A stretch of DNA of 64,000 nt, taken from IMG/VR virus record IMGVR_UViG_3300026097_000876, positions 1 through 64,000 of that record; one strand, 5' to 3'. Shown here piece after piece: positions 1-59,004 of this stretch (position 1 is the stretch's first letter; every line of letters starts with the position of its first letter). Made by a program: the position numbers and the translations under genes. Below the pieces are notes generated by a model. It was not told the origin of the DNA, ran no database searches, and saw only the letters and a list, made by a program, of their open reading frames with translations.

Positions 1-17
1 TACTAAGAGACCAAAAA

Positions 18-93
<76 letters not shown>

Positions 94-97
94 AATA

Positions 98-172
98 TGG
101 TGGAGGATGGGAGGGTCGAACTCCCGACTTCGCCGTGCAAGGGCAATGTTTTCCCAACTATACTAATCCCCC
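98..172 (-). tRNA. tRNA-Ala(UGC)
   Basis: Anticodon loop CTTGCAC; G3:U70 pair; encoded CCA. Confidence 0.95.
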
Positions 173-176
173 AAAG

Positions 177-260
177 TGGTGGAGAGTGATGGATTCGAAC
201 CACCGCGCAGTTACGACCTGATTTACAGTCAGGTGCTTTCGACCACTCAGCCAACTCTCC
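177..260 (-). tRNA. tRNA-Tyr(GUA)
   Basis: CCTGA-CTGTAAA-TCAGG; long variable arm; CCA. Confidence 0.95.
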
Positions 261-302
261 GCAAACTTGGGACTGTCTTTAAGGCGCAGTCATTCCTTTA
301 AA

Positions 303-379
303 TGGCTCCGGATGAGGGACTCGAACCCCCGCAGACGCGGTTTTGGAGACCGCCGCTCTTCCAACTGAGCTAATCCGGA
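303..379 (-). tRNA. tRNA-Trp(CCA)
   Basis: GCGGT-CTCCAAA-ACCGC; CCA end. Confidence 0.95.
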
Positions 380-385
380 ATAAAA

Positions 386-462
386 TGGTCGGGATTGCTG
401 GATTCGAACCAACGACATCATGCTCCCAAAGCATGCACTCTACCAGACTGAGCTAAACCCCG
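386..462 (-). tRNA. tRNA-Pro(UGG)
   Basis: CATGC-TTTGGGA-GCATG; CCA end. Confidence 0.95.
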
Positions 463-466
463 ATAT

Positions 467-542
467 TGGAGCCACGGACAGGAGTTGCACCTGCATAGTA
501 AGGATTTGCAGTCCTCTGCCTAACTGTTCGAGCCACCGTGGC
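467..542 (-). tRNA. tRNA-Cys(GCA)
   Basis: Anticodon loop CTGCAAA; U73 discriminator; variant T-loop TGCAACT. Confidence 0.9.
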
Positions 543-549
543 GTAAATT

Positions 550-634
550 TGGCGACAGCGTGTAGACGGTGCCTCGCTCCACCGTTTCGTGTCGACCGGG
601 TTACCCCACAGTCCAGATCACTACACTTAACCCA
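550..634 (-). ncRNA. CCA-terminated structured non-tRNA RNA between tRNA-Asn and tRNA-Cys
   Basis: Stems GTGTAG/CTACAC, ACGGTG/CACCGT, GGG-GTAA-CCC; ends GTCGCCA; no T-loop or anticodon arm. Confidence 0.55.
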
Positions 635-640
635 CGAAAG

Positions 641-716
641 TGGCTGCCCGAGCAGGACTCGAACCTGCGACCAAGAGATTAACAGTCTCCTGCTCTACCA
701 ACTGAGCTATCAGGCA
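641..716 (-). tRNA. tRNA-Asn(GUU)
   Basis: GGAGA-CTGTTAA-TCTCT; CCA end. Confidence 0.95.
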
Positions 717-725
717 ATAAACTAA

Positions 726-758
726 TGAGCAGTTTCATCCACACTTGCTCAGGTGTGG
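726..758 (-). ncRNA. Small H-type pseudoknot motif, copy A
   Basis: S1 CCACAC/GTGTGG, S2 TGAGCA/TGCTCA, loop ending AAAC. Confidence 0.6.
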
Positions 759-827
759 CCGGCCGGCATTTGTTAATCGTTAAAAGCCATTAGGTCTTAC
801 AAGCCTGATGCCTAAACAGAGCAGGAA

Positions 828-855
828 CAAGCAGTTTAAAATCATACTCAGGATC
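828..855 (-). ncRNA. Small H-type pseudoknot motif, copy B
   Basis: S1 GATC/GATT, S2 TGAGTA/TGCTTG, loop ending AAAC. Confidence 0.55.
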
Positions 856-901
856 ATCACAATAGGGGAACTCTAAGAGCGCAAACCCTAATGCCTATAC
901 T

Positions 902-1074
902 AAAACACATTAGAAAGTGTGCTTATTTTTATTGCCCGATAGCCTAGGATTTGGCAGGGTCTGTCTAATGCGTCTACAAGGTAGCTAATCCTCTACGACG
1001 AGCTAGGACACTTACAGTTCACGCTGGGGTTACCACACTGAACTCAACCCTAAGCACACTTTCTAATGTATTTT
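902..1074 (-). ncRNA. ~170-nt structured element closed by a 24-bp stem
   Basis: Inverted repeat AAAATACATTAGAAAGTGTGCTTA / TAAGCACACTTTCTAATGTGTTTT (one G.U); internal AGTTCA/TGAACT stem; no ORF; promoter directly upstream. Confidence 0.55.
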
Positions 1075-1075
1075 C

Positions 1076-1120
1076 TCTAACTGTTATACACAGTATAAAG
1101 TCGTGTTATTGTTTTGTCAA
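1076..1120 (-). promoter_or_regulatory. Sigma70-type early promoter
   Basis: TTGACA-17 nt-TATACT followed by GTGTATAACAGTTAG. Confidence 0.8.
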
Positions 1121-1121
1121 C

Positions 1122-1221
1122 CTTATTATAAAGCACACTACGGAATCGAACCGTTTTTTGTGTTGTAACACCTATCGCCACGACCTAGTAGCTACTATAG
1201 GCTAGTGTGCTTTATAATAAG
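1122..1221 (-). ncRNA. tRNA-like element lacking a canonical anticodon arm and CCA
   Basis: 19-bp closing stem, TA-GCCT...AGGT D-like arm, ACGG-TTCGATT-CCGT T-arm. Confidence 0.55.
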
Positions 1222-1321
1222 TGCTGGGCTATCCCCAGCTTGACCTATCTTGTAACATCCAGGCCGCCGCCCATTTATTTTTTATAGTGCTTGTAGGTTC
1301 GCGTTACCATTTGCACTTGCA

Positions 1322-1355
1322 TTAAAAAACCCCGGAGTATTTCTACTTCGGGGTT
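1322..1355 (-). terminator. Intrinsic terminator (part of putative attenuator)
   Basis: AACCCCGAAGTA-GAAA-TACTCCGGGGTT followed by U run. Confidence 0.8.
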
Positions 1356-1381
1356 CCGTATAATCTGTTAACTTAACTAAA

Positions 1382-1480
1382 CTATACGGAACTCCCACGA
1401 TCATAAATCCAACCACAGAACATCCCCGCCGGATTCGACTGGACCTCTGTTGTGTTCTTATGCATCGTTTTGTTCATCAT
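1382..1480 (-). CDS. Putative 32-aa leaderless leader peptide MMNKTMHKNTTEVQSNPAGMFCGWIYDRGSSV
   Basis: ATG 6 nt after the -10 hexamer; stop codon lies in the 5' arm of an antiterminator hairpin. Confidence 0.55.
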   Translation of the reverse strand: MMNKTMHKNTTEVQSNPAGMFCGWIYDRGSSV

Positions 1481-1486
1481 AGTGTT

Positions 1487-1516
1487 ATATTAACCTCGTT
1501 GACTCTGTTTGTCAAC
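1487..1516 (-). promoter_or_regulatory. Sigma70-type promoter with overlapping GTTGAC-N7-GTCAAC palindrome
   Basis: TTGACA-17 nt-TAATAT; dyad at 1498-1516. Confidence 0.65.
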
Positions 1517-1546
1517 CTCTTTTTACCTTTTTATTTATCTTTTTTC

Positions 1547-1621
1547 TGGAGCGGGTAGCGAGAATCGAACTCGCATCTAAGCGTTGGCAACGCTTTGTAA
1601 TAACCATTATACGATACCCGC
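1547..1621 (-). tRNA. tRNA-Gly(GCC)
   Basis: AAGCG-TTGCCAA-CGCTT; U73; CCA. Confidence 0.95.
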
Positions 1622-1628
1622 AATATTT

Positions 1629-1937
1629 TTAAATACGCTGTCCTGGTTCATAAAACTGAAATGTCTTGCCAGCGGCAAACACACAGGCTATGTCATTATC
1701 TTTATTCACAACTATAAAGCTCCAAGACTGTGTTTCTGTGTTTATCCACAGTGACGAATACAGTAAGCTGTCATTTCCCTCAGCAATGCCTTCACTTAGA
1801 AATATTAGTTCTTCGTTGTACTCTTGTTTTATAAAGTCAAGTACTATCTCTGTTTTAGCGCAATCAACTGGAACGTCATATACTTCTGCTTTTGCTGGTG
1901 AGGCGATGAGCAAAAACATCGCCAATAGGTATTTCAT
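1629..1937 (-). CDS. Small secreted hypothetical protein inside the tRNA cluster
   Basis: GGAGAG RBS before ATG 1937; signal peptide MKYLLAMFLLIASPAKA. Confidence 0.7.
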   Translation of the reverse strand: MKYLLAMFLLIASPAKAEVYDVPVDCAKTEIVLDFIKQEYNEELIFLSEGIAEGNDSLLYSSLWINTETQSWSFIVVNKDNDIACVFAAGKTFQFYEPGQRI

Positions 1938-1950
1938 TTTTCTCTCCAAA

Positions 1951-1978
1951 TGAGTAGTTTTAAAACTTACTCAGGTTT
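1951..1978 (-). ncRNA. Small H-type pseudoknot motif, copy C
   Basis: S1 AAAC/GTTT, S2 TGAGTA/TACTCA; ends 3 nt before the RBS of the next gene. Confidence 0.55.
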
Positions 1979-2200
1979 ACCTTTCCTGGGCACCATTTGC
2001 TCAATTGTTTTACAAGGGGAACAAAACCCTTAAAAATTTTTACACAATGCAAAGAGTGAGTGGTTAACCAATGCATCGACCTAGCTACTTGATAAACTAT
2101 GTCTATCTTTCACTACTTTCAGGCGGTTCAGGCCTTTATCGCCGTCTCCCTAAGGAGCTTGTGTCTAGGTCTTTTTATAGTAGTACCGAATCTACATATT

Positions 2201-2277
2201 TGGTGCCGCTGGAGGGAGTCGAACCCCCAACCTTCTGGACCTAAACCAGACGCCTCTGCCAATTGGGCTACAGCGGC
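2201..2277 (-). tRNA. tRNA-Leu(UAG) with short variable loop
   Basis: TCTGG-TTTAGGT-CCAGA; A73; 77 nt; 5-nt variable region. Confidence 0.85.
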
Positions 2278-2291
2278 AAATATCATATTTA

Positions 2292-2382
2292 TGGCGGAGA
2301 TGGAGGGATTCGAACCCTCGATACGCTATTAACGTATACTCCCTTAGCAGGGGAGCGCGATCGACCACTCTGCCACATCTCC
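2292..2382 (-). tRNA. tRNA-Ser(GCU)
   Basis: CTCCC-CTGCTAA-GGGAG; long variable arm; G73; CCA. Confidence 0.95.
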
Positions 2383-2424
2383 ATGTTCCTTTAAATAACG
2401 TTGTAAACTTTTTAGCTTACTTAA

Positions 2425-2456
2425 TTATAATAGCAATTTATTTAGTATTTGTCAAC
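2425..2456 (-). promoter_or_regulatory. Sigma70-type promoter for tRNA-Ser/Leu
   Basis: TTGACA-17 nt-TATTAT. Confidence 0.7.
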
Positions 2457-2481
2457 TACTATTTTTAGTTTTTTCTAAAAA

Positions 2482-3078
2482 CTACCTCATTAAAGTAGAA
2501 ACATCAATATATGATTGGTCTAATGTGTTAAAACTAATAGTGTATCTTTCGTCACTAGAGTTTCTTTGAGTCTCATGATAAAGATAACTAGGCCAAATTA
2601 TTAATTTTCCTGCTTTAGTTGGTATTGCAACATTTTCTATATTATATTCTGTATCATGCTGTTTGGTTTCTGACATCTTAAAAACTGTAGTAGGATTTTC
2701 AATTATTAACGCACAATCATCTGGATCACTAGTTGGATAGTATGCTCCACTTAATACACTCTTTTCATGTCGATGTCTTTTAACTTTGCCGCCTTCTTTG
2801 AGAACATTACACCAACTGTTTACAATAGTGTTTTGTTGTATTCCTGCCTGATCGCAATACACACGCAAACAAGCATCAATTGATTGTCGTAAATCAGCCA
2901 TCGCTAACCTTGTAAGAGCACAATCATATCCTCCAATATAGCTGCTAAGTCCTTTCTCTAAGACTCCGTGCATCTGTAGTCCGCTAATTTGAATTTTCTT
3001 CATAATCACATCGTTATCGACTTGATCAGAAAGATCAAACTCTGCTACAAGAGTAGGAAATAGATTGTGCATTAACAC
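2482..3078 (-). CDS. Putative 2OG-Fe(II) oxygenase (TIGR02466-like)
   Basis: HRHE...SGAYY...IIWPSYLYHET...RYTISFN. Confidence 0.8.
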   Translation of the reverse strand: MLMHNLFPTLVAEFDLSDQVDNDVIMKKIQISGLQMHGVLEKGLSSYIGGYDCALTRLAMADLRQSIDACLRVYCDQAGIQQNTIVNSWCNVLKEGGKVKRHRHEKSVLSGAYYPTSDPDDCALIIENPTTVFKMSETKQHDTEYNIENVAIPTKAGKLIIWPSYLYHETQRNSSDERYTISFNTLDQSYIDVSTLMR

Positions 3079-3461: not shown

Positions 3462-4079
3462 TTAACGTGCTTCTGCCACTTTATCAGCAAGACCATATTC
3501 TACAGCTTCTTCTGCTGTTAAGAATGTATCAAACTTCATTGTTTCAAATAGCTCTTCGTAGCCTTTGCCTGCTGTGTTGTGTTTTACATACAGTTCGGTT
3601 AGGCGTTTGTTAATCTTTTTACTTTCTTCAAATGCACGTTTTGCATCTTCAAACTCAAGTTCTTGTACATGTACGCTACCGCTTGTGCCACGTGTACCTG
3701 AACTTACACGGTGAATCATTGTGCGGCTTTCTGGCAACACTACACGCTTGCCTGCTGTACCTGCTTGTGCTAGGAAACTACCCATTGAACATGCTTGGCC
3801 CATTACAATAGTTTGCACATCGCATTTGATATACTGCATTGTGTCGTAGATAGCAAGTCCTGCTGTTACAGCACCGCCTGGGCTATTAATATACAGATTA
3901 ATTGTTTTCTCTGGATTTTGTGATTCAAGAAAAAGTAACTGTGCTACAATTACATTGGCCATGTGATCTTCAACTGGACCGTTTAACATCACAATACGAT
4001 CCTTTAGCAACCGACTATAAATGTCGTATGCTCGTTCGCCTTTTGCTTCTTTTTCAACCACCATTGGAATTAGTGCCAT
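3462..4079 (-). CDS. clpP: ATP-dependent Clp protease proteolytic subunit
   Basis: [27 protein letters not shown] (Ser), MIH (His), [15 protein letters not shown]. Confidence 0.95.
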
Positions 4080-4793: not shown

Positions 4794-5588
4794 TTATACC
4801 TTGTATAGTTTTACATAGTTAAGACGTGTTTCGTCTGCGCTGAACATACGATTCTTTGTATGCGACTTTACTTTAGCTTTAAGACGCTTGCGAGCACCTA
4901 CAGCGTGTTCGTACTTGTTCATGAAGCTAACTAGGTTGCCGTCAACTACACCTACGTAGTTGTAGCTCTCCCACTGACTGCTGTAACGCTTGTCCAGTAT
5001 TTCAATTACACCTTCTACAGTTGCGCCAACAGGCTCAATGTGACGGCTGTCACGGTACTCAATACGGATAGTTTTTGTAAGACTTGCCTCGTGCTGATCA
5101 CGTGCGATAAACTCCGGAGCAAACGCAATACGGCCCATGCTCTTAACCGCTACTTGGTCTTGCGACAGTTCTTTAACCATATCTACCTTGAAGCTGTCCA
5201 GCTCACCCAAGCCCAGCATCACATAACGCTTCATCCACTTGCGAGCCTCTTCTACACTAGCATAGTCTGCTTCAGTAGGTTCAAACATTTCAAAGTCTGT
5301 AGGAAGATACTTTGCGTCAGCAGTGTCCAACTTCTTAGCCCAGTAGAAACGCACAAGACTCTTATTGTCAAACTGTGTCTTGTTGTCTTCTGAGAAGCGA
5401 CGAGTGTCTTTGGTGTAAGTGTTGCCGTTGATGCGATATACTGCATACGCTACAGCAAGTGCGTCTGCTAGACTTACCGTTTTCAAAGGAACAGTTCTGT
5501 AAGATTTGTTGTGACTGTGCTTTAGAGCTTCGTCTTCGTGACGTAGTTCAAATGCAATTTCATCTTTTTTGAATTGTGAAAGTGCCAT
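4794..5588 (-). CDS. Hypothetical early protein
   Basis: Own TTGACA/TATACT promoter at ~5614-5640 and AGAGG RBS. Confidence 0.7.
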   Translation of the reverse strand: MALSQFKKDEIAFELRHEDEALKHSHNKSYRTVPLKTVSLADALAVAYAVYRINGNTYTKDTRRFSEDNKTQFDNKSLVRFYWAKKLDTADAKYLPTDFEMFEPTEADYASVEEARKWMKRYVMLGLGELDSFKVDMVKELSQDQVAVKSMGRIAFAPEFIARDQHEASLTKTIRIEYRDSRHIEPVGATVEGVIEILDKRYSSQWESYNYVGVVDGNLVSFMNKYEHAVGARKRLKAKVKSHTKNRMFSADETRLNYVKLYKV

Positions 5589-5630: not shown

Positions 5631-6101
5631 TCAGAATACAAGATTGTCAAGTGTTTCTTTTAGAAATTCAATTTCTTCTTTGTTGTGCTTCCAAGCAAAT
5701 CCGCGGCTTTTAAATAGTCCGAGGCTAGTGTCTATATCATAAACCTTGCCAAAGCTATTGGTCATATTTTCGCTACTAGTTGCTAGGATAGTGGTATCGT
5801 TGGCACGATAGAACTGCCACCATTCGTTGCACTCCATCAATGGACCATCTAGCATAGTAGTATAAGTTTTATGTCGATCTACCAAATGACTACGGTTGAT
5901 ACCCATGCGACTTACTTTCTTATAACCATGTTCAGCAAACACACGTAGGGCATCTTCGGTAATTCCTATCACTTGCCAATGGTCAGGACATAGCGACAAT
6001 AGCTCTCCTAGCATACGAGCCCGTTTACTAGTTGGTGCTCGCATATTGCGAATTAGCAAGTAATCGTGATATAAATCTTCTTTGTTCACTTTTGTGTCCA
6101 C
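5631..6101 (-). CDS. Hypothetical protein
   Basis: 156-aa ORF in the operon. Confidence 0.6.
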   Translation of the reverse strand: MDTKVNKEDLYHDYLLIRNMRAPTSKRARMLGELLSLCPDHWQVIGITEDALRVFAEHGYKKVSRMGINRSHLVDRHKTYTTMLDGPLMECNEWWQFYRANDTTILATSSENMTNSFGKVYDIDTSLGLFKSRGFAWKHNKEEIEFLKETLDNLVF

Positions 6102-57710: not shown

Positions 57711-59004
57711 TTGGTAAATATTAGTATGAGATATCAATTACTAGACGACCAAATAGGAAATTTTTTGATTGTGGACACCTGGAAACAACAGGTGATAGGC
57801 AAAGGAACCAAACTGAAGGTGAGTGCTCGCATGTGTCAAAAGCTCAATCGCAGGTTGGGCCACGACAGAGCACGTGAACAATTTTGCCAATACTGGTTGA
57901 CAACTTGATCAATCACGTGTAGTATTAACAGTGTAGAAATTAGAACAGGCACTGACTATGATCAAAATACTAGCGTTAGCCATCACACTCACAGGCTGTG
58001 CAAACACAGCTGAATGGGCGCGAGGCACTAGCTCACACGATCCTCACACAGGTGATTGGATCTTTATTCAGAATGAGCCATTAGCAGCTCAACGACAGGC
58101 TTATCGCGAACAAGGTTGGCGTTGGGGCGATGAAAAACCACCACAGTACTAGGAACACACATGCAGATACAAGATCTAACACCAGGCAACAGCTATGCTT
58201 GCCGCTTTCGAACACAAACCACCTTGGACGATCAAGGACAACCCGCTCCCAATCTCCGCAGGCCCACACAAGGCACAGGTGAATACACAGGCTTGGGTGT
58301 GATCATGCAGAGAGACACAGCACAACAGTTGGTTAGGTTAAGAGATGTAGCCAGCGACGAAGTTTTTGTGGTTGCATGGCAAGACTGTTGGGACGTGGAC
58401 ACTGTGGAATGGAAGGAGCCGTTTGATGCGGGAACTGATTGAATTTTTAGAAGATCTCCACAGCCTGCCACACAGCGAAGCACTGGAAGATCTCATAAAC
58501 AAATATACACAACAACTGGAACACATGGAGACAGCATATGAACAAGAGTTTTTTGCGAGCACATCCCCTCACGACCACACTGAGTGATCAAGACCGTGAG
58601 CGCATAATTCAAAAGCTGCGCACGGACACCGTCCCCACCACAGAAGAATTGGCTGTGTTGGAAGACCTCGTGTTTGACGGTATAGCAGAAAAACTCAGCA
58701 CCCATCCTCCCGCGGACGAGCTACAATGAGCAAGTACACACTGGACGATGACACACGAGAGCTGTTAGAGATCATACTCAACTGGAGTGCACACTACACC
58801 GAACTTCAAGCACACGAAGAAACACAACAGGACATGGCCGCACTGATCCAAGAAACAGCACAAGCATTTGGCATTCCCTACAAAACTGTGCATGTGGAAG
58901 AAATAGAAAACCCAGACGGCACTGTAAAACTGGACGTGACTATCTCTGACAGCGACACAGAGGAAGAAGATTTCCCAGATCCCCCAGAGGATACCCTACA
59001 CTAG
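57711..59004 (+). CDS. Run of small plus-strand ORFs (57711-57908, 57958-58152 lipoprotein, 58161-58442, ~58429-58587, 58538-58729, 58726-59004)
   Basis: TTGACA/TAGTAT promoter at ~57898-57926; overlapping junctions; LTGC lipobox. Confidence 0.55.

Follow-up and report, generated by a model that had tools for sequence, protein, structure and literature searches.

The window analysed here was the stretch of 64,000 nucleotides at positions 1 to 64,000 of the IMG/VR virus record IMGVR_UViG_3300026097_000876, a jumbo-phage record of 261,806 bases. In the region concerned, all genes, tRNAs and sigma-70 promoters are on the minus strand, and the three repeated elements described below are read from that transcribed strand. 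The features, with positions in the window, were as follows.

641 to 716, minus strand: tRNA-Asn(GUU), identified by ARAGORN and Rfam; its 5' end, the RNase P cleavage site, lies 9 nt downstream of copy A.
726 to 758, minus strand: pseudoknot copy A, ending 9 nt upstream of tRNA-Asn.
828 to 855, minus strand: pseudoknot copy B, 69 nt upstream of copy A.
864 to 889, minus strand: hairpin AGGGUUU...GUUCCCCU, 8 nt upstream of copy B.
1092 to 1120, minus strand: sigma-70-type promoter (TTGACA-17-TATACT; 11 of 12 matches in a consensus scan), driving the transcript that carries a 177-nt structured RNA, copies B and A, and the run of tRNAs that starts with tRNA-Asn.
1629 to 1937, minus strand: ORF of 102 aa with an N-terminal signal-peptide-like stretch (phrog_25396, unknown function); its ribosome-binding site abuts copy C.
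1951 to 1978, minus strand: pseudoknot copy C, followed by UUU, GGAG (1947-1944) and the ATG at 1937.
2014 to 2031, minus strand: hairpin AAGGG-loop-CCCCUU, 35 nt upstream of copy C.
2427 to 2455, minus strand: sigma-70-type promoter (TTGACA-17-TATTAT, with TG; same scan), upstream of tRNA-Ser, tRNA-Leu, copy C and the 102-aa ORF.

Each copy comprised a first stem (S1), a one-base loop (L1), the 5' strand of a second stem (S2), a one-base loop (L2), the 3' strand of S1, a third loop (L3) and the 3' strand of S2. In copy A, these were S1 758-753 CCACAC, L1 C752, S2 751-746 UGAGCA, L2 A745, S1' 744-739 GUGUGG (six pairs in S1), L3 738-732 AUGAAAC and S2' 731-726 UGCUCA. In copy B, they were S1 855-852 GAUC, C851, S2 850-845 UGAGUA, U844, S1' 843-840 GAUU, L3 839-834 UUAAAC and S2' 833-828 UGCUUG, with one G-U pair in S1 and three in S2. 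In copy C, they were S1 1978-1975 AAAC, C1974, S2 1973-1968 UGAGUA, A1967, S1' 1966-1963 GUUU, L3 1962-1957 UAAAAC and S2' 1956-1951 UACUCA.

A preliminary description, made from sequence alone, had reported three copies of an H-type pseudoknot here with covarying stems; this observation was confirmed, although the functional strand is minus. The pattern CTGAGYA-N(4-25)-AAACTRCT gave three matches in the window, against 0.01 expected, and no further match in the whole record. The construction of a covariance model and a search for relatives had been proposed beforehand as a test of the repeats; when this was carried out, the family model scored copies A, B and C at 39.7 bits (E = 1.5e-11), 39.2 bits and 42.7 bits respectively (E about 1e-11), although these copies made up 3 of the 134 training rows, while the next best hit in the window scored 8 bits. 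All three carried every invariant letter of the family (C-C-U-G-R-G-Y-A ... G ... A-A-A-C-U-R-C, with S1 pairing on either side of the first block). A possible fourth copy at 2003-1987 (UGAGCA...UGCCCA) was not recognised by the model and lacked CUGAG and AAAC.

Pattern scans of IMG/VR and of GTDB genomes gave at least 378 distinct instances, from tailed phages, prophages and some bacterial chromosomes. These defined a family of 27–30 nt H-type pseudoknots in which S1 has 3–6 freely covarying pairs, closed by an invariant C-G; a single C (L1) crosses the deep groove of S2; S2 is six nearly invariant pairs, UGRGYA/URCYYA; one junction base follows; and L3 is 6–7 nt, ends in AAAC and is placed to lie in the minor groove of S1. 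It had been stated in advance that the structure would be in doubt if homologues did not keep both stems, and both were found to covary. Among 134 aligned instances, 95% of cells paired, compared with 22–48% when the partner columns were slid; three S1 pairs showed 53–69 double changes each, all four Watson-Crick pair types occurred in S1, and none of 500 shuffles reached the observed values. In S2, forcing position 13 to G gave C at its partner in 101 and U in 5 of 106 cases, and never A or G; further compensated S2 variants were found with the covariance model. The three copies alone were thin evidence, but the 378 relatives settle the point. G-U pairs were frequent, and would be mismatches on the other strand or in DNA; furthermore, 151 of 163 phage instances lay on the coding strand and only three lay inside long same-strand ORFs. 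This showed that the element acts as RNA.

The interpretation in the preliminary description was therefore partly supported. A selected H-type pseudoknot with two covarying stems was upheld, while the choice that had been left between RNA and ssDNA is refined in favour of RNA. The AGGG...CCCU hairpins, said to precede both clusters, do exist, folding at -8.3 kcal/mol (z = -0.8; 864-889) and -6.2 kcal/mol (z = -2.3; 2014-2031), but their inclusion in the element was not supported; there was no upstream sequence conservation in the family and only a modest enrichment of upstream hairpins (24% against 11% with z below -1.5), so they are local companions in this phage. Comparison with Rfam families such as STAXI, which had also been named as a check, gave no support for kinship; no Rfam 15 family reached E<=10, and permissive cmscan runs on window positions 1–3000 and 715–900, and on positions 2400–2520 of a further sequence (L010), returned only tRNAs and noise. 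Models without a match included STAXI, preQ1-I/II/III, pistol, hatchet, twister, twister-sister, hammerhead and HDV-like. Of the functions suggested (nuclease block, processing signal or protein-binding decoy), genomic context favours a boundary or nuclease-block role, but nothing was tested experimentally.

Other routes to relatives yielded little. BLAST of the region against GenBank phages matched only the tRNAs, and relatives sought through the downstream ORF comprised only one identical contig. The motif was absent from PA5oct, whose ClpP is 69% identical to that of the window, and from Syn30, Syn9, S-PM2, P-SSM2, T4 and KVP40. Literature searches by sequence string and by topic found no description of the element; a paper on permuted hammerheads, two 2026 genome-language-model surveys and the IMG/VR structured-RNA catalogue were considered and rejected.

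Copies sat at gene boundaries. The distance from the end of the stop codon to the loop C peaked sharply at 9–10 nt and was never below 8, and therefore S1 starts about 5 nt after the stop; the median distance from the stop to the nominal 5' edge of the motif was 9–14 nt. Cleavage sites lay just downstream in some instances: tRNA 5' ends were 3–10 nt after the knot in nine phage cases, including this window; type III hammerheads started 1–5 nt after it in six cases, leaving tails of 5–12 nt; and DUF2800 RNA started about 2 nt after it in four loci. Elsewhere, copies lay just before ribosome-binding sites; copy C ends 3 nt before its GGAG. In a group of related IMG/VR contigs with several different S1 sequences, an extended -10 promoter (TGnTATAAT) followed within 8–10 nt; there the knot ends the preceding transcription unit, as the stem-loop does in PeSL terminator/promoter composites (PMC4122927). 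A convergent gene followed 19 phage and 21 bacterial instances. Several copies can sit in one intergenic region, as in this window and in another sequence (L030). In prophages of Lacticaseibacillus chiayiensis NCYUAS, Latilactobacillus fragifolii AMBP162 and Ligilactobacillus salitolerans YK43, the copy lies between the minor-head and scaffold genes. At least one CRISPR spacer targets the element.

While the fold and its formation by the sense transcript are demonstrated by these data, its mechanism is inferred, and only tentatively. In the preferred view, the element works as punctuation in polycistronic transcripts, being a mechanically stable knot that becomes the 3' terminus of the upstream RNA once the transcript is cut a few bases downstream, whether by RNase P at a tRNA 5' end, by a hammerhead, or by RNase E/Y in the AU-rich spacer before a ribosome-binding site. 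That exonucleases need a single-stranded 3' tail of roughly 7–10 nt is established knowledge and was not tested here; with a tail of only 3–12 nt, the knot would deny 3'-to-5' exonucleases a foothold, and would also keep neighbouring RNAs from misfolding into each other. In this window, copy A, with copy B as a second barrier, would cap the roughly 360-nt leader RNA that RNase P releases at tRNA-Asn, while copy C would separate the spacer RNA downstream of tRNA-Leu from the mRNA of the 102-aa, putatively secreted protein. Several points count against this view. No experimental data exist. A simple roadblock does not explain why S2, L1 and AAAC are almost invariant across phyla, since ordinary GC-rich hairpins do that job elsewhere. 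Nested-fold energies were weak (-1.1 to -9.6 kcal/mol, z about 0; -1.1 kcal/mol for copy B), and an alternative bulged long hairpin is possible for copy C; stability must come from tertiary contacts, which were not computed, and RNA ends were not examined. In addition, 15 phage and nine bacterial instances had a divergent gene upstream, which points to a 5'-UTR role, and none of the three copies in this window follows a protein-coding gene.

Among the alternatives, the best placed, although unlikely, is that the element is a recognition site (or a decoy) for a universally conserved machine or protein, such as the ribosome at termination or re-initiation, RNase P, NusB/E-type factors or a tRNA-binding enzyme. 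The near-invariant sequence of a helix (S2), and of L1 and L3, across hosts from Cyanobacteria to Saccharibacteria and Lactobacillaceae implies base-specific readout by something common to all of them, and the fixed spacing to the stop codon, peaking at 9–10 nt, places S2 at the leading edge of a terminating ribosome, the size of the ribosome footprint being established knowledge. S2 with its flanking A residues has the same letters as the commonest tRNA D-stem (GCUCA...GAGCA) in permuted order, and the tRNA-Asn downstream of copy A carries exactly that D-arm, although the resemblance is 5–6 nt and may be chance. Multi-copy arrangements would suit a sponge. Against this, about 7% of copies precede tRNAs or ribozymes rather than genes, and no candidate factor was tested. 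Recoding is excluded, because there was no frame preference relative to the upstream stop (54/51/49) and read-through extensions were short (median 7 codons).

Somewhat less likely still is a new, very small class of self-cleaving ribozyme, or the core of one, that cuts polycistronic phage transcripts at gene boundaries. An invariant core plus one freely covarying stem is typical of small ribozymes, and the niche matches that of hammerhead, twister, pistol and hatchet, being intergenic, on the sense strand, in phage or prophage, next to tRNAs and with several copies per genome; the element lies directly beside hammerheads in six loci, and different ribozyme classes are known to cluster. The junction base N17 is variable and is G least often. 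However, at 27–30 nt with two helices it is smaller than any known natural self-cleaving ribozyme; a hammerhead placed 1–5 nt downstream would be redundant; and in about 14 bacterial loci a conserved micro-ORF stops at the UGA inside S2, such that cleavage there would give non-stop mRNA. Hammerheads have CUGAnGA and GAAA cores in a three-helix junction, with a cleavage site after H17; hammerhead kinship was rejected, because the block is CUGAGYA rather than CUGAnGA, with a pyrimidine where G8 should be, is base-paired, and has no conserved base before AAAC.

A ligand-binding aptamer of the preQ1-I size class, sensing a ubiquitous metabolite or ion, is improbable; architecture and size do match the smallest riboswitch aptamers (an H-type knot with an A-rich L3 and conserved S2 and loops), but the flanking genes are highly diverse (nuclease, Zn-ribbon protein, sHSP, scaffold protein, integrase and tRNAs), which also rejects a pathway riboswitch, no Shine-Dalgarno sequence or terminator is built into the fold, the element usually sits directly after a stop codon, and no preQ1 or other riboswitch model matched. 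The weakest alternative is action at the DNA level, as a PeSL-like recombination or shuffling module or an ssDNA structure, with conservation through horizontal spread; its position at gene-cassette boundaries and next to promoters in T4-like cyanophage-type contigs (compare PMC4122927), and its patchy distribution among related phages (present in Synechococcus phage S-SM2, with a copy at 57789-57810, but not in those listed above), are outweighed by an S1 that covaries while its sequence diverges completely around invariant loops, which is selection on a fold and not identity by descent, by strand-specific G-U pairs and by the strong sense-strand bias.

An RNA motif of 28 nt whose loops and second stem are almost letter-perfect from cyanophages to Lactobacillus prophages and Saccharibacteria chromosomes must do something basic. 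If it is an end-cap or insulator, it explains how phages set independent stabilities for neighbouring cistrons and for the leaders of tRNA clusters, and it would be a ready-made, host-independent part for synthetic operons. If it is a ribozyme or a universal factor-binding site, it is a new RNA class; the boldest such reading, considered unlikely but not excluded, is that phages use as portable gene punctuation either the smallest natural self-cleaving ribozyme or a universal, D-stem-like mimic of the tRNA core that engages a machine common to all bacteria. In practice, the element is also an annotation mark for gene boundaries in uncultured phage genomes.

Comparison with known systems identified partial resemblances. 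Small self-cleaving ribozymes of phages (hammerhead, twister, pistol, hatchet and HDV-like theta; PMC10879173, PMC4604425) share the genomic niche and style of conservation, but the element is half their size, matches no ribozyme model and lacks equivalents of the hammerhead catalytic G8 and G12. Pistol also has an H-type knot followed by AAA. STAXI and type III antitoxin (ToxI-like) RNAs are likewise repeated small pseudoknots associated with mobile elements; ToxI-like RNAs are tandem direct repeats next to an endoribonuclease toxin gene; here, the copies are not tandem direct repeats, because S1 differs in each, and neighbouring ORFs in the window had other or no annotations, with no gene association typical of either system, although no dedicated toxin-model search was run and the ToxI-like assignment was left undecided. 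The 3' stabilising stem-loops and retroregulators of bacterial and phage mRNAs (REP hairpins, RNase III-processed T7 3' hairpins), and the PeSL composites of T4-like phages (PMC4122927), are intergenic, on the sense strand, at the 3' end of a cistron and sometimes immediately followed by a promoter, which is the mode of action proposed here; those are simple, lineage-specific hairpins, whereas this is a sequence-invariant pseudoknot shared across phyla. For PeSLs in particular the comparison settled neither way, since the element-plus-promoter arrangement was seen in the group of related contigs but not for the three window copies, and the pseudoknot is not one of the published stem-loops. Unlike an intrinsic terminator, a GC-rich hairpin immediately followed by a U tract, the element had no conserved U tract after S2 where the scan pattern left those positions free, and a terminator scan did not call the window copies. 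Luteovirus (BWYV-type) frameshift and MuLV read-through pseudoknots are very compact knots stabilised by tertiary contacts, and their spacer of about 5–8 nt from the decoding site resembles the spacing from the stop codon seen here, but the element has no frame preference or meaningful extension ORF, and many copies precede tRNAs, ribozymes or promoters. The preQ1-I aptamer, the smallest known riboswitch, is also a classical H-type fold of about 30 nt, with a short L1, an A-rich L3 in the minor groove of stem 1 and a conserved second stem; however, the conserved letters differ, and whereas preQ1-I lies in the 5' UTR of queuosine or transport genes with the Shine-Dalgarno sequence sequestered in P2, the element is not tied to queuosine genes, and the ribosome-binding site lies a few nt downstream of S2. 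Finally, the T2/T4 gene 32 mRNA pseudoknot is a phage H-type knot with a one-nucleotide L1 spanning a 6–7 bp stem 2, but its sequence differs, and the present element is not linked to an ssDNA-binding-protein gene and is absent from T4.

The window comprises the first 64 kb of a 261,806-base IMG/VR record that is classed as linear and about 73% complete. The record represents a jumbo phage; its ClpP-like protease is 69% identical to that of Pseudomonas phage PA5oct and its relatives, and it also encodes ribonucleotide reductase and many proteins without known families. The protease gene and a gene for a 2OG-Fe(II) oxygenase lie directly upstream of the tRNA region, although synteny with PA5oct is not kept there. 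Nearly all ORFs of 150 aa or more in the first 46 kb lie on the minus strand, as do ten tRNA genes within bases 18-2382 and three near-consensus sigma-70 promoters; therefore, the repeated element must be read on the minus strand. An identical contig (L004), which extends past the window start, showed that the tRNA cluster continues beyond base 1 with Asp, Glu, Ser, Gly, Phe, Lys, Ile, Val, Gln and Arg (L004 4926-5953), for 20 tRNAs in all. A second small cluster (Arg, Leu, Met) lies on the plus strand just beyond the window, at 66842-67093 (66.8-67.1 kb). The features of this region were as follows:

2455-2427, 1515-1487 and 1120-1092, minus strand: near-consensus sigma-70 promoters.
2482-3078 and 3462-4079, minus strand: the 2OG-Fe(II) oxygenase and the ClpP-like protease.
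1322-1353, minus strand: a strong intrinsic terminator (CCCCG..GAAA..CGGGG followed by UUUUUU), after a short ORF of about 32 aa downstream of the 1515-1487 promoter; a simple terminator scan missed it.
1122-1221, minus strand: a perfect 19-nt inverted repeat (1122-1140 / 1203-1221) enclosing 62 nt that carry a T-arm-like GGUUCGAUUCC hairpin (-36.2 kcal/mol, z -5.7). It may be a tRNA-like or degenerate tRNA element with an extended stem, but is called by neither ARAGORN nor Rfam.
900-1076, minus strand: a 24-nt inverted repeat (902-925 / 1051-1074, 96% complementary) closing a 177-nt RNA directly downstream of the 1120-1092 promoter (-64.4 kcal/mol, z -6.6). The long perfect stem resembles an RNase III substrate or a stable phage ncRNA; there was no Rfam match.
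598-609 and 1027-1038: two copies of the 12-mer GGGTTACCMCAC, of unknown meaning, one in the 98-nt spacer between tRNA-Asn and tRNA-Cys and the other inside the 177-nt structured RNA.

The preliminary description reported three copies of a compact H-type pseudoknot, and this observation was confirmed. Read as RNA from the minus strand, each copy has the order: 5' strand of stem 1 (S1), C, 5' strand of stem 2 (S2), one base, 3' strand of S1, a loop ending in AAAC, and 3' strand of S2. The stems of the three copies were:

Copy A, minus strand, ending 9 nt before tRNA-Asn: S1 CCACAC/GUGUGG, S2 UGAGCA/UGCUCA.
Copy B, minus strand: S1 GAUC/GAUU, S2 UGAGUA/UGCUUG.
Copy C, minus strand, ending 3 nt before GGAG and 13 nt before the ATG of a 102-aa ORF with a signal-peptide-like N-terminus: S1 AAAC/GUUU, S2 UGAGUA/UACUCA.

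The shared pattern occurred 3 times in the window, against 0.01 expected, and nowhere else in the 262-kb record. The two AGGG...CCCU hairpins that had been noted beside the copies are also present and fold.

The element belongs to a large family. A scan of IMG/VR with a pattern built from the conserved letters identified at least 118 contigs, and 81 of 122 matches had exactly the same internal spacing. A scan of one genome per GTDB species, using a stricter pattern for which about 17 chance hits were estimated, identified at least 119 stretches of DNA; these included many Saccharibacteria, several Lactobacillaceae, Anaerolineae, Deltaproteobacteria, Bacteroidota, Actinomycetes and cyanobacteria. 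A third scan, for an S2 variant, identified at least 116 contigs. Together the loci retrieved hold 378 distinct instances, and the true number is larger. Copy number was 1-7 per retrieved stretch, and several copies can share one intergenic region. Among named phages, the element was found only in Synechococcus phage S-SM2, between SSM2_084 and SSM2_085; it was absent from Syn30, Syn9, S-PM2, P-SSM2, T4, KVP40 and PA5oct. In one Cloacimonadota MAG (locus L199, about 5045-5190), and possibly in a second locus (L198, about 6000-6090), the element is associated with a CRISPR array; in L199 the whole pseudoknot lies inside a 37-nt spacer of an array whose repeat is 37 nt with a period of 75. A host has therefore acquired immunity against a phage at this conserved element.

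It had been proposed at the outset that the structure should be discarded if homologues did not keep both stems, and the family was examined for this. On 134 aligned phage instances the specified pseudoknot paired in 95% of cells, whereas the figure fell to 22-48% when the partner columns were slid; none of 500 shuffles reached the observed values. In S1, three pairs each showed all four Watson-Crick types, with 53-69 double changes per pair. The pair at the helical junction was C-G in 122 of 134 rows, most of the exceptions being misaligned rows, while the next pair was almost always A-U or U-A. S2 had been fixed by the search patterns, and was therefore tested separately. A covariance model carrying only S1 found lower-scoring copies with compensated S2 changes, A-U to G-C at pair 13-36 and G-C to A-U at pair 12-37. 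A scan that forced G at position 13 and left its partner free returned C in 101 and U in 5 of 106 instances, and never A or G. The patterns bias which positions look invariant, and this was corrected only at S2 pair 13-36 and through the model search. Pair 15-34 runs C-G, U-G, U-A, and the three window copies show exactly this series. Typical dimensions were S1 of 4 bp, a first loop (L1) of 1 nt, S2 of 6 bp, a second loop of 1 nt and a third of 6-7 nt; this is the classical geometry in which a single base can span the deep groove of a 6-bp stem. Nested-fold energies were unremarkable, and the case therefore rests on covariation. The preliminary description had allowed for either RNA or single-stranded DNA; frequent G-U pairs, together with the sense orientation (151 of 163 phage instances, only 3 inside long same-strand ORFs), show that the fold belongs to the RNA.

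Flanking genes were diverse on both sides. Downstream examples included a thermonuclease, Zn-ribbon proteins and an sHSP reached through a promoter. In four Lactobacillaceae prophages the element lies between the minor head protein and scaffold genes, in two Weissella loci it lies in front of an integrase, and in Saccharibacteria the surroundings look chromosomal. The position, in contrast, was stereotyped, with the qualification that gene calls in these loci are ORF-based proxies. The end of the upstream stop codon lay 9-10 nt before the loop C in 60 of 154 clear cases and never closer than 8 nt, without frame preference. The element was closer to the upstream stop (median 9-14 nt) than to the downstream start codon (median 34-47 nt). 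Convergent downstream genes occurred in 19 phage and 21 bacterial cases, while divergent upstream genes occurred in 15 and 9, respectively. In a group of related IMG/VR contigs with several different S1 sequences, TGnTATAAT followed after 8-10 nt, which is the layout of PeSL terminator/promoter composites in T4-like phages.

Where the next feature was a structured RNA, it followed at once. tRNAs began 3-10 nt later in 9 phage cases, and type III hammerheads began 1-5 nt later in 6 cases. The DUF2800 RNA motif (RF02960) began about 2 nt later in four Firmicutes-type loci (L246 912-1071, L167 5432-5592, L195 5051-5208 and L249 1598-1754); these two elements may form one functional unit that the Rfam model truncates. 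In 14 bacterial loci (L152, L162, L165, L173, L179, L207, L216, L230, L231, L236, L153, L193, L211 and L241), a conserved micro-ORF of about 20-22 codons (M-K-R-Y/F-x-I/V-P-R-x-A-H-C-S/D-E-G-C-x-x-x-S) ends at the UGA that is part of S2. It occurs in metagenome-assembled genomes of several phyla, in ordinary chromosomal surroundings and often with a convergent gene downstream. No Pfam or NCBIfam family matched it; it could encode a small metal-binding or arrest peptide.

The preliminary interpretation, a selected structure acting as a nuclease block, processing signal or protein-binding decoy, was supported only in part. A selected RNA fold at cistron and RNA boundaries is what the data demonstrate; they do not show what it does, expression was not examined, and the mechanism is inferred. 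An end-cap or insulator role is tentatively favoured. In this view, wherever a known cleavage event lies downstream (RNase P, hammerhead), it would leave the knot as the 3' end of the upstream RNA, with a tail too short for 3' exonucleases; where a promoter or a convergent gene follows, the knot ends the transcription unit. In the window, RNase P cleavage at tRNA-Asn would release a leader of about 360 nt that starts at the 1120-1092 promoter, contains the very stable 177-nt structured RNA and ends in copy A plus 9 nt. The weak point of this model is the near-invariance of S2, L1 and AAAC, which a passive roadblock does not need, and this feature keeps three rivals alive. A site read by a universal machine, such as the terminating ribosome or RNase P, or a tRNA D-stem-like decoy, is possible but unlikely; a very small self-cleaving ribozyme is more doubtful still, and a ligand-binding aptamer is improbable. 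A DNA-level shuffling module is the least likely. Readings as a recoding signal, a terminator and a pathway riboswitch were tested and rejected.

Comparison with Rfam had been suggested beforehand as a check on kinship with repeated-pseudoknot families; no Rfam 15 model matched the element under permissive settings, although neighbouring known RNAs were detected normally. Full-text searches by sequence string and by topic found no description, within a limited view of the literature, and it is possible, though less likely than not, that the element has been named somewhere. As a family it appears to be new. In kind it is a compact H-type pseudoknot, nearest in build to preQ1-I aptamers and luteoviral frameshift knots, while in proposed function it is nearest to 3' stabilising hairpins and PeSLs.
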